A DNA stretch of 63,636 bases, counting the filler, from Choristocarpus tenellus KU-1152 (lineage: Eukaryota > Protista > Phaeophyceae), in assembly GCA_964200185.2 (NCBI GenBank). It is 9 parts of 9 records of this genome, joined end to end, with 100 filler letters (N's around TTAATTAATTAA, not from the genome) between each part and the next. Parts side by side here need not be neighbours in the genome. Positions count along the whole stretch, not along the records: positions 22,393 to 25,394 come from CAXNAD020023010.1; 8 more parts are not named here. One strand, given 5' to 3'. Each line of letters opens with the position of its first letter. Positions within the stretch are counted from its first letter, which is position 1. The translations under genes and the position numbers were made by a program. Under the pieces are notes generated by a model. The model did not search any database and was not told the DNA's origin. It saw only the letters and a program-made list of their open reading frames with translations. Shown piece after piece: positions 22,393 through 25,394 of the stretch.

Positions 22393-22485
22393 GAGGAAGC
22401 GCTCAACAAACTCCCCCAAAAAACGCGCCATCGAAAAATAGGCCCCAAACGACCAGCCCCCCCCCCCCCCCAGATACTTTGATTC
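22393..22485. mobile_element. MITE right end (C-run + CAGATACTTTGATTC), truncated by gap
   Basis: Same terminal motif as family A. A left-end-like CCAAAGTATCTGG sits just before the gap at ~22275. Confidence 0.65.
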
Positions 22486-22546
22486 GCTCTTCTCTGATCC
22501 TTGCAATATTACCTGCACGTTTTTACTGCCGAATATCTCTTCCCAG

Positions 22547-23915
22547 GGCAAGTGGACTTGGCATATCATAAACAAGAACCGCAATGTGCACGATAACCGG
22601 CTTTGTAATCTAGCCTACAGCGAAACTGGGCGTTACTACTCCAGGGACTTGGAATATCGAACACGACCCACCCCACCTGATCTCTCAGGTGTTGTCGATA
22701 GCTTCCATTGGAGGGTGCACCCCGATTTTCCAGAGATTGAGGTTCGTGGTTTGCTGTCACCTTTATAGCAAAAACAAGACTAGAGAATGCTGCGAAATGC
22801 TGCACTATCTGTGGTCTTCGTATGCTATCTGACCGTGGAGGTTACTCCAAGAGTGGTCACTCGTTTCTTTCCTGCTGCATTGAACCATTTCAGCATGCCC
22901 TATTTTCTGTGTTGAAACTCAAATTCAGCTCATGTACATAAAATGCGATCCATCCAACCCTCGGAAGGCACTCATGTGCATTTTTTTTGGTCTTCAGGTC
23001 GCTATGGAGGGAGCCATACGCTACTCGGATGCATCGCGCAATACCGTGAAGTACATCAGGCCTTGGATCGATCATTATGGTTCTGTCCAGTCTAGGTGGT
23101 TGGTTTCACCAAAGGAGAAAAAGAGACGAACAGTTGTGCTCCACAACATAGTGTACAGAACCTGGGGGAGGTGGATCCCTGAATACCAATCGAGCTACTG
23201 GAGGGTGGTACACATCAATGGTGACAAACAAAACAATCGCATGACCAACTTGGAGATGCGGAGCGTTGAGGTATGCAGATCATGAGAAATTTCTTGGATA
23301 AATTTCTTGGATGTTCACTCCTCCTCTTCCTTATCACGGTTGTTTTACCCTACAAGTTCGTACATAGTTAGGGTGAACCTTAGGAAGGCGTGCCATACCC
23401 TCAGAAATAATATCTGATGAATGATACTGGCTACGCTGGTGGGGGGTCCGTTTGAAACCTCTGCATTTTTTTTTTTCCCTTGTTTGTGTGCACCAAACTC
23501 TTGGGACATTGTGCACAGGCGAATACCCACCTCAGGGCGTATAGTTGATCTAGCTGAACCTCAATGCTCTGCCCGACCATAATAGAAGTATTGTAGACAT
23601 GACATCAAGTGATGGTTTTTGCCTTTCTACTTCACACAGGAGATTTACAGGATGCAGGAGCCGGATCAGAAGCTCCACGCTGTTAAGGCATCTGGCATCG
23701 CAGGGGTGGTGTGGGATGAAGCCAAGGAAAAGTGGAAGGTCAAAGGGAGAGCAGATAGGAAAGACATTCATCTAGGCTATTTTGATAAGGTCTCTGAAGC
23801 CGAGAGAGTGTTGGATGAGTTCAAATCCATTCGAAAGTTCTATCTCGTCAAGGCACTTGAGCAGACCAAGCGTGAACCTGGACCCGAGGATTCTGAAAAT
23901 GTTTCGATCGATTAG
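22547..23915 (+). CDS. Intron-containing HNH-NUMOD4-HNH-AP2 protein (3' part; 5' exons missing beyond gap)
   Basis: Exons 22547-22741, 22998-23270 and 23640-23915 all join in phase 0 (CAG acceptors; GTTCGT and GTATGC donors). The translation contains IINKNRNVHDNRLCNL (HNH-like), WRVHPDFPEIE|VAMEGAIR (NUMOD4-like, split by an intron), LHNIV...VVHINGDKQNNRMTNLE (HNH_3-like) and SGIAGVVWDEAKEKWKVKGRADRKDIHLGYFDKVSEAE (AP2-like). No internal stops. Confidence 0.8.
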
Positions 23916-25222
23916 AAATAGAAGGAGATTTAGTACCTTTTTGAATTTTTGGTATGGTTTTTACATGTGATATTTTTTGGAAAGAGTGGTCTGAGAAAGT
24001 GGTTGAGTTTTGAGGCCAGAAAAGCATTACAGCATCGTTTGTGTGTTGGAGGCAGCCGTCCTGTGTTAATCTGGAACTGTGCAACCTTCATGGATTGATT
24101 CCAGTGTATTCAGAAGCTTGACTATTCTGGAATTTACCTTATTGCTAGTCATACCAGCTAGCTCACACTTCCTAGCAGCCAATCAGCTGTCGCTCTTTCT
24201 TCAGTTTCAATTTCGAGATTGGACTTGTGAAATTCTAGAGCCCATATCAGGGCCAGTACTATGGTGCAATGATTGTGTCGATTTTTGTGTTTCTTTGCCT
24301 TTTTCATGTCAATCTTCTGTTGTATTATCTTACTTGCNNNNNNNNNNGGGCAGTATTTTGGGGGAAAGTTTTGTGTGTTTTTTTTTTTTTTTTTCTTTTT
24401 TTTTTTTAATTTTTTTTTTTTTTCCCCCCCCCCCCCCCCCCCCCCCAACCTGTGATTTATATTTCGTATATATGTGTCTGCCAATTTGGATCGAGTTCCC
24501 CTTCTCCTGATGCTCTTTTGTCAAATAGTCTCGGTGTCCACTGCAAGGGTCTCATCCTTCATCAAGACAATTTTTCTGTTTATAGATAGGTGTGTGTGAT
24601 GCTAATGAAGTGGAACATGGAGTGCGTTACTTGTAGTCAAGGGTTAAAGGGTTTTGATGCCAATATTCATAAGGAGAATAGTACTTTTCAAGTGTGTTTG
24701 AGCCTTGATCAGGAGACTTCATTCTGTAATGTAATGCAGGCAGCATCAAGTTTGAGTGACAAATGGTATGTTGTTCTCTTACAGAAATAATGACCAGTGT
24801 ATCAACCCACTTGCTGGGGGGTCAACTGACTTTCTTGCTTTCATGCCCTATGTGGTAACAATGGTCACTCTCCTAACTATGTGATAATCTACTTGAATAC
24901 TACAATTAATATTGCTAGTGTAATATTTGTCAAGAAACTGGTGCATTTTTGCTTTCAGGTTCCGATCTATTCCAACTTCTACCTTTTAGTCACATGACAA
25001 AGGAAACTCTCATTGAACTAACTCCCTGCTCAAGGTGAGGAGTGAGCACTCTATCCCTGAAGGGAGATACCTAATGTCATGTGTGTCTCTTGTAAAAGAC
25101 TGCTGTTCTGACTGACTTGAATGAAGTGATACACTTGGGCAAAGGGCAGACTCACTGCCTACCACCCTGAAAGAGTAGATAGAGGGATGGATATGTAGGT
25201 GCATCCCATTGGAGGCCTCATT

Positions 25223-25394
25223 GGCTCAAAGTATCTGAGGGGGGGCGGCAGCTGTCCATTTGGGGTCAATTTTTTCATGTCGCGATTCTTGGTTGATTTG
25301 GTAAGCTTACGTCAGATGGACAATTTAAACACACTTTTCTTGACTTTGTCCCAAATGGACACCCTGGTGTGGACTCCCCCTCCCCCCCCCCCCC
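25223..25394. mobile_element. MITE family D, right end lost in gap
   Basis: Starts GGCTCAAAGTATCTGAGGGGGGG. Interior is the reverse complement of 40422-40602. Confidence 0.8.

Follow-up and report, generated by a model that had tools for sequence, protein, structure and literature searches.

The gene described here lies in Choristocarpus tenellus KU-1152, an early-branching brown alga, on a contig of 3,002 bp that was examined whole and that occupies positions 22393-25394 of the window (the entire stretch of DNA analysed, 63,636 nt). It encodes degenerate HNH modules followed by an AP2 domain, and the described systems that come closest to it are phage endonucleases and a few groups of AP2 proteins. 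In I-HmuI, the HNH homing and nicking endonuclease of Bacillus phage SPO1 (1u3e), an N-terminal beta-sheet region and an HNH beta-beta-alpha core with the catalytic triad D74/H75/N96 (PMC12724721) are combined with helical and helix-turn-helix domains for DNA binding at the C-terminus. The HNH–AP2 homing endonucleases of phages and bacteria (PHROGs 99, 959, 4578 and 3593; for example that of Escherichia phage phiG7) carry an HNH_3 and then an AP2 domain, and are intronless, single-module proteins of 130-250 amino acids (aa) that keep the D-H...N ligands (34-37 of 37). Apicomplexan AP2 proteins, including those of the Toxoplasma mitoribosome (9i05, 9g6k), have the AP2 fold and no HNH modules. 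In Tetrahymena, HNH–AP2 genes reportedly reside in mobile elements limited to the germline and count as homing endonucleases. Where PMC4117751 cites Wuitschick et al. (2004), the germline-limited Tlr elements of Tetrahymena thermophila are given as a case of HNH–AP2 genes in a eukaryotic nuclear genome, and where it cites Magnani et al. (2004), a route from endonuclease to transcription factor is given as the hypothesis for plant AP2/ERF proteins.

We suggest, at a probability of roughly 0.7, that the window holds the three 3′ exons of a nuclear gene with spliceosomal introns, which belongs to a family of domesticated, probably nuclease-dead HNH–AP2 derivatives. Our literature search found no prior description of an HNH–AP2 family of C. 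tenellus. The likeness to I-HmuI covers the N-terminal beta-sheet region and the HNH core, with the same HNH_3 spacing of 21 residues from His to Asn, whereas in the algal family the equivalents of D74 and N96 are replaced, the module occurs twice in tandem, AP2 stands in place of the C-terminal helical domains, and the gene is nuclear with spliceosomal introns instead of residing within a self-splicing intron. With the phage and bacterial HNH–AP2 proteins the algal ones share the domain order, 25-37% identity over 110-150 residues and the AP2 core columns, but they differ in their two degenerate modules, introns, predicted N-terminal presequence and length of 471-545 aa. Spliceosomal introns, host-like flanks and the lack of near-identical copies set them apart from homing endonucleases in general. 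From the Tetrahymena Tlr genes they are set apart by description only, as genes that are dispersed among host genes, old and intron-bearing, and that have lost their ligands.

The AP2 fold is shared with plant AP2/ERF factors, and the proposed route, from an HNH–AP2 endonuclease to a host DNA-binding protein, is the same. However, plant factors have no HNH part, while the algal family retains two apparently inactive HNH modules, which would represent an intermediate state. The two appear to be of independent origin and without orthology, the nearest relatives of the algal proteins being phage-type and metagenomic. The algal paralogues carry a predicted signal peptide, and their cellular destination probably differs. 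The event as such would be of a known kind, namely capture of HNH–AP2 genes by eukaryotes, as in the Tetrahymena Tlr elements and as proposed for plant AP2/ERF.

Exon structure and paralogous genes

Translation of three plus-strand exons (22547-22741, 22998-23270 and 23640-23915) gives 247 codons without a stop (65, 91, and 91 plus TAG). GT donors are found at 22742 and 23271 and AG acceptors at 22996-97 and 23638-39, every junction being in phase 0. When left unspliced, the frames terminate at stops 22766-68 and 23283-85, within 5-9 codons of entering the introns. The first-pass annotation had claimed precisely this 247-aa C-terminal part, and its coordinates, frames and stops were all reproduced. 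The gene and its surroundings, including the deposited protein model P0001 discussed below, are laid out as follows.

22393-22546, plus strand: 3′ end of intron A, truncated by the contig start, with a polypyrimidine tract and AG at 22545-46
22547-22741, plus strand: exon of 65 codons; module 1 contributes its degenerate HNH (WH-IINK...DNR..NL...SET) and, beyond a linker, module 2 its first strand motif (W.VHPDFPEIE)
22742-22997, plus strand: intron B (intron 1 of the first-pass annotation), 256 nt, GT-AG, phase 0
22932-22997, plus strand: ATG and first 22 codons of P0001, inside intron B and without counterpart in the paralogues
22998-23270, plus strand: exon of 91 codons, encoding the I-HmuI-like beta-sheet region and HNH_3 motif of module 2, with the His present and Val as the Asp equivalent
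23271-23639, plus strand: intron C (intron 2 of the first-pass annotation), 369 nt, GT-AG, phase 0
23640-23915, plus strand: last exon of 91 codons and the stop TAG; encodes the AP2 domain (SG..GV.W...KW...HLGYF...EA) plus a C-terminal helix
23916-25394, strand not assigned: downstream non-coding DNA, probably 3′ untranslated region and intergenic sequence, with a 10-N gap at 24338-24347 and T/C homopolymer runs

Read-through of intron B is ruled out by the in-frame stop at 22766-68. An exhaustive HMMER search returned two more C. tenellus proteins, encoded on other contigs (L003 and L004, respectively): P0002 (471 aa; 48% identity to the window protein, E = 1e-49) and P0007 (545 aa; 32%, E = 1e-17), which are 24% identical to each other overall. 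Exact exon mapping places phase-0 GT-AG introns at three homologous sites in both genes. The intron A site ('..DGK|GKWTW..' in P0002, '..DDK|DLWRI..' in P0007) is that of the window acceptor at 22546|22547; the intron B site falls at '..PEIE|VAMEGAIR..' and '..PEIE|VSREGAVR..' (L003 8111-8291 and L004 3108-3336, same position and phase); and the intron C site at '..NLEVVSCE|ETYR..' and '..NLDAVE|VQEAW..'. The 195-nt and 273-nt exons are identical in length between the window and P0002, the 65-codon exon is 62% identical to its 195-nt P0002 counterpart, and tblastn of P0002 against the window gives three pieces bounded by the splice sites (E = 2e-23, 2e-26 and 4e-18). Alignments to homologues also run across the junctions: intronless phage homologues span the exon 2/3 junction in one alignment (query 71-181), and module 2 of P0002 matches phrog_959 continuously across the exon 1/2 junction. 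Two further introns, one of 721 nt in phase 1 and one of 492 nt, bring the P0007 gene (L004 2095-5492) to five. Just within intron C of the window copy, a perfect 13-bp tandem duplication (AAATTTCTTGGAT x2) occupies 23287-23312.

P0001, a deposited 204-aa 'unnamed protein product', was the sole protein returned by the word search and is 100% identical to the exon-2 open reading frame (ORF). It uses the intron 23271-23639 exactly, and the exon 22547-22741 is omitted from the public annotation. Its start at 22932 was probably forced by the missing 5′ exons, the truncation of the contig accounting for a deposited start codon that lies within an intron; the predicted local distance difference test (pLDDT) of its AlphaFold (AF2) model is below 50 for residues 1-18. 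As judged from the paralogue introns at homologous sites, the intron match of P0001 and the homologue alignments that span the junctions, the three-exon model is correct and improves on the deposited one, whose start is hereby corrected, and the introns of the first-pass annotation can be regarded as real.

Between the contig start and the acceptor at 22547 there are only 153 nt, and a C15 run (22457-22471) lies inside this remnant of intron A. No exon-1-like coding sequence was found upstream of 22547 on the contig by tblastn with P0002. An identity of three residues ('LPN') to the end of P0002 exon 1, just 5′ of the acceptor, was considered and dismissed as chance, since the sequence before it shows no relation and the frame meets a stop 35 codons upstream. 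The paralogues have an intron at the site of this acceptor, and the contig edge is near, from which we conclude that the window gene is cut at its 5′ side by the contig end and that its first exon (~183-259 codons in the paralogues), on this comparison, lies past the edge. Runs of C, G or T and 10-N gaps occur at or near the ends of all three contigs (22457-22471, 24338-24347, 24378-24446 and 25382-25394 in the window; L003 1694-1808; L004 8480-8532). They resemble points at which the assembly broke, or else a simple-sequence feature that recurs in the C. tenellus genome, and homopolymer breaks of this kind at contig ends would explain the 5′ cut. Outside the gene, no Pfam or Rfam match, notable repeat or additional gene was found on the contig.

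We consider it improbable that the window copy is a 5′-truncated, non-functional duplicate of a functional family member. Such a pseudogene would fit a contig without the first exon, where poly-C interrupts the 153 nt 5′ of the acceptor and the deposited model begins at an intronic ATG. However, 247 codons are free of stops and frameshifts over three exons, with undamaged splice sites and conserved exon lengths, and nonsynonymous differences are proportionally fewer than synonymous ones (see below). The copy is also cut just where the contig ends and where homopolymers break the assembly, as they do on the paralogue contigs.

HNH modules, AP2 domain and catalytic residues

Proteins of this family are laid out as a predicted presequence and a variable region, module 1, module 2, and then one AP2 domain (P0002 and the window copy) or two (P0007). 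Each module consists of a strand motif and an HNH, the latter degenerate in module 1. The Pfam HNH_3 profile (PF13392), which the first-pass annotation had named as a check, matches exon 2 at E = 1.6e-6 and 28.1 bits, above the cut-off of 24.8, and exceeds the cut-off also in P0001 (27.1 bits), P0002 (31.1) and P0007 (31.6). Exon 2 matches PHROG HNH-endonuclease families with E-values down to 6e-11 (phrog_959). Taken alone, the exon 22547-22741 gives a marginal E of 0.11 against phrog_959, while module 1 of the paralogues matches it at 8e-9 and 6e-12; in all, every paralogue module matches phrog_959 over ~8-100 of its 138 positions (E = 8e-9 to 4e-13). Exon 3 matches PHROG HNH–AP2 families at E = 8e-10, and the AP2 core columns (G-V-x-W, K-W, LG-F, E-A) are conserved in the alignment with relatives. 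An NCBIfam search gave nothing meaningful, and a search of PDB sequences with P0002 gave no match.

The AF2 model of P0001 has a mean pLDDT of 78.7 and draws on an alignment of 40 sequences. Its top PDB match is I-HmuI 1u3e (Foldseek probability 1.00; VIA Z 9.9, root-mean-square deviation 2.9 Å over 101 residues, 23% identity), covering I-HmuI residues 1-106, that is, the beta-sheet DNA-binding region and the beta-beta-alpha-metal fold. Residues 128-185 of the model match the AP2 folds of TEM1 (7et4, Z 7.3), WRI1 (7wq5, Z 7.2) and AtERF1 (1gcc, Z 6.1), and residues 124-199 have structural neighbours with the AP2 fold in the mitoribosome of Toxoplasma gondii (9i05_Xz, Z 7.2; 9g6k_Lk, Z 6.8).

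The first-pass annotation had also pointed out that both HNH units deviate from the DH...N...N ligand pattern. This was borne out, and the deviations proved common to all three paralogues when these were aligned with 37 single-module phage-type relatives.

D74 equivalent, module 2: D in 34/37 relatives; V, R and R in the window copy, P0002 and P0007
H75 equivalent, module 2: H in 37/37 relatives; H, H and H in the algal proteins
N96 equivalent, module 2: N in 35/37 relatives; I, T and A in the algal proteins

In P0001 numbering, the replaced ligands of the window copy are V93 and I115, and intron C is positioned one residue ahead of the lost metal-binding Asn. In module 1, the DH pair reads WH in the window copy, WQ in P0002 and EY in P0007, so that the His is lost in two of three, and the terminal Asn is changed to Thr in the window copy. 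Because they are common to the paralogues, the ligand losses predate the paralogue split, and by this measure the domestication is older than the paralogue divergence. By analogy with the I-HmuI mechanism, the replacements would abolish DNA cleavage and the proteins are probably nuclease-dead. Two of the 37 relatives, the metagenomic (Logan) single-module HNH–AP2 proteins P0031 and P0107, are likewise without the Asp and without the final Asn (patterns T...S and R...H), indicating that ligand loss occurs sporadically outside the algal family too.

A nicking or homing endonuclease that is still active through a non-canonical active site, or that belongs to an inserted mobile or viral element, seems very improbable to us. 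HNH–AP2 proteins are usually mobile endonucleases, giant-virus insertions are numerous in brown algae, and module 2 keeps its general-base His together with a structural Asn, and has a conserved Glu beside the lost Asn. This is countered by the replacement of both metal ligands in 3/3 paralogues, with Arg at the Asp position in two of them, while an inserted element is hard to reconcile with conserved spliceosomal introns, the absence of viral or transposable-element (TE) ORFs nearby, a host LSM gene as neighbour, the lack of close copies and of relatives in IMG/VR, and the deep divergence of the paralogues.

Family history, constraint and genomic setting

In the tree, the three C. tenellus proteins fall into a single group, supported at 100/99, on a long stem. 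The motifs YRTWG and PEIEV were found in none of the 168 other proteins retrieved, and scans of IMG/VR and JGI metagenomes with family patterns gave no relatives. The next-best matches are unnamed metagenomic proteins, multi-AP2 green-algal proteins (Mesostigma, Cymbomonas) and bacterial HNH–AP2 proteins. Word-index searches with the 117-aa ORF, P0001 and P0002 returned nothing besides the query itself. On present sequence collections, this is a small, old family of at least three paralogues and so far confined to Choristocarpus.

Selective constraint was assessed by Nei-Gojobori counting on each exon separately, the counts then being added up. Between the window copy and P0002, the proportions of nonsynonymous and synonymous differences (pN and pS) are 0.31 and 0.64, and the ratio of the corresponding rates (dN/dS) is ~0.4 where dS is defined (0.37-0.41 per exon, and broadly 0.3-0.4), a value that is not near 1 and is to be read as approximate, dS being at or near saturation here and saturated against P0007. 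Rough as these numbers are, saturated dS together with pN below pS indicates that the duplications are old and that the constraint on the protein persists.

The flanking DNA is host-like and not a TE or giant-virus insert. In the flanks of the paralogue contigs there are no ORFs of at least 110 aa with Pfam matches and no TE or viral ORFs, and an intron-rich LSM gene (L004 1-1787, minus strand) adjoins the P0007 gene, divergently and ~300 bp away. The dispersed copies within a TE or viral insert that would mark mobile cargo were found neither in the flanks nor by word search, and the lack of near-identical copies, the host-like flanks and the introns all argue against such cargo; a viral-insert origin of the locus was ruled out by flank content and introns.

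The origin of the three contigs from another eukaryote in the culture is, in our view, exceedingly improbable. They are short (3-10.6 kb), and among the searches made the family appeared in no other brown alga. However, GC content is 44-45% in all three, with similar exon and intron composition, the assembly was decontaminated and bears the NCBI label C. tenellus, and the predicted presequence with its aromatic +1 residue (discussed below) is in keeping with an alga whose complex plastid is of the red type.

In the light of the paralogues, the domestication put forward by the first-pass annotation keeps its main elements (HNH–AP2 origin, an intact coding sequence, lost ligands and a probable lack of nuclease activity), but concerns a family of at least three members and not a lone gene. 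We suggest that the family goes back to a single HNH–AP2 homing endonuclease of phage or bacterial type, which was captured by the host, duplicated internally into two I-HmuI-like modules and subsequently split by introns. The resulting protein would no longer cut DNA but would bind nucleic acid in a sequence-specific manner. Its putative reading heads would be the beta-sheet of the AP2 domain and the beta-sheet modules that resemble I-HmuI.

Several observations weigh against this reading. Module 2 retains the His, structural Asn and Glu noted above, and residual or altered nuclease activity may persist. The first-pass annotation had described a NUMOD4-like motif split by an intron, but Pfam NUMOD4 (PF07463) was matched by neither the exons nor the whole paralogues nor four isolated N-terminal module pieces, even with E-values up to 10 admitted; the likeness is therefore one seen by eye, and the only profile parallel of this part is with the N-terminal positions of phrog_959. 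The AP2 domain, as claimed at the outset, is upheld by its core columns, fold and PHROG match, although the Pfam AP2 profile (PF00847) scores 14.7 bits (E = 0.038) on window exon 3, below the cut-off of 33.3, which P0007 exceeds with 36.7 bits. In the AlphaFold model of full-length P0002, pLDDT is below 50 over residues 1-253, a region covered by two sequences, leaving module 1 and the N-terminus without a confident model. Support for splicing comes from paralogue conservation and from the depositors' models; according to the Phaeoexplorer paper, such models drew on homologous proteins and RNA-seq. The window copy is so far without a 5′ exon and could be a truncated duplicate, and dN/dS is limited by the saturation of dS. 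Lastly, the family is found in one draft assembly only, and none was found in other brown algae, whose presence in the searched collections is unconfirmed.

Predicted presequence and place of action

Since the N-terminus of the window protein lies off the contig, the presequence was examined on P0002 and P0007 only. Residues 1-22 of the two proteins (genes from L003 7239 and L004 2095 onwards) align without gaps and show an n-region with Arg, an uncharged h-region, C-x-A at -3 to -1, a cleavage site at 21|22 and Tyr at +1; P0007 also has Phe at +3. The next 30 residues contain 6 S+T, 4-6 K+R and 1-2 D+E. For algae whose complex plastids are of the red type, ASAFind (PMC4329603) takes F/W/Y/L at +1 behind a signal peptide, together with a stretch of this composition, as the signature of plastid import. 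With the published ASAFind matrix, the transit score of P0002 is 1.68 and that of P0007 1.40, or 4.62 at R23|F24; both would fall in the class 'plastid, low confidence', conditional on a positive SignalP result and on a matrix trained on diatoms.

The full-length proteins would, on this prediction, enter the endoplasmic reticulum (ER) through the conserved N-terminal signal peptide. The Tyr/Phe after the signal peptide and the S/R-rich stretch lead us to propose, tentatively and at somewhat under even odds, that they are imported into the complex plastid and might act there on plastid DNA or RNA instead of in the nucleus. The more specific picture of a plastid-imported nucleic-acid-binding family, with two inactivated HNH modules and an AP2 domain derived from a phage-type homing endonuclease, must be called doubtful as a whole. 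Another fate in the ER or the secretory pathway is a weaker candidate still, and what probability remains, after a nuclear role is allowed for, falls to a non-functional copy or an artefact. The AP2 folds of the Toxoplasma mitoribosome (Z 6.8-7.2) serve as a reminder that AP2 can be employed in organellar RNA binding; they provide a precedent for AP2 proteins acting within an organelle, on nucleic acid that is not a nuclear promoter. Nothing points to common descent, and for the algal proteins an organelle role is predicted from the presequence only.

A nuclease-dead HNH–AP2 protein could alternatively be a sequence-specific transcriptional regulator in the nucleus, close to the DNA-binding regulator of the first-pass annotation. 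AP2 is a classic transcription-factor domain, catalytic ligands have been lost from intron-bearing host genes, and the basic cluster KEKKRR of the window copy could serve as a nuclear localisation signal. This cluster is not kept in the paralogues, however, and the conserved hydrophobic signal peptide on both full-length paralogues implies co-translational entry into the ER. The predicted signal peptide, the aromatic residue and the S/R-rich stretch together somewhat disfavour the regulator role, which we regard as unlikely, and an organellar or secretory route appears more likely than the nucleus as the place of action.

The origin of eukaryotic AP2 proteins from HNH–AP2 endonucleases has so far been argued mainly from domain similarity. 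The domesticated HNH–AP2 family of C. tenellus would be an independent case caught halfway, in which the HNH parts are still present, and have been duplicated and constrained, while the metal ligands are lost. The genes themselves have become wholly 'eukaryotised', carrying spliceosomal introns that are conserved and a candidate targeting presequence. If the proteins are plastid-targeted, they would constitute a previously undescribed nucleus-encoded nucleic-acid-binding factor of heterokont plastids and candidate regulators of plastid gene expression. If true, the family would offer a living intermediate on the route from endonuclease to AP2 factor, and a new class of proteins that bind organelle genomes or RNA in complex plastids.

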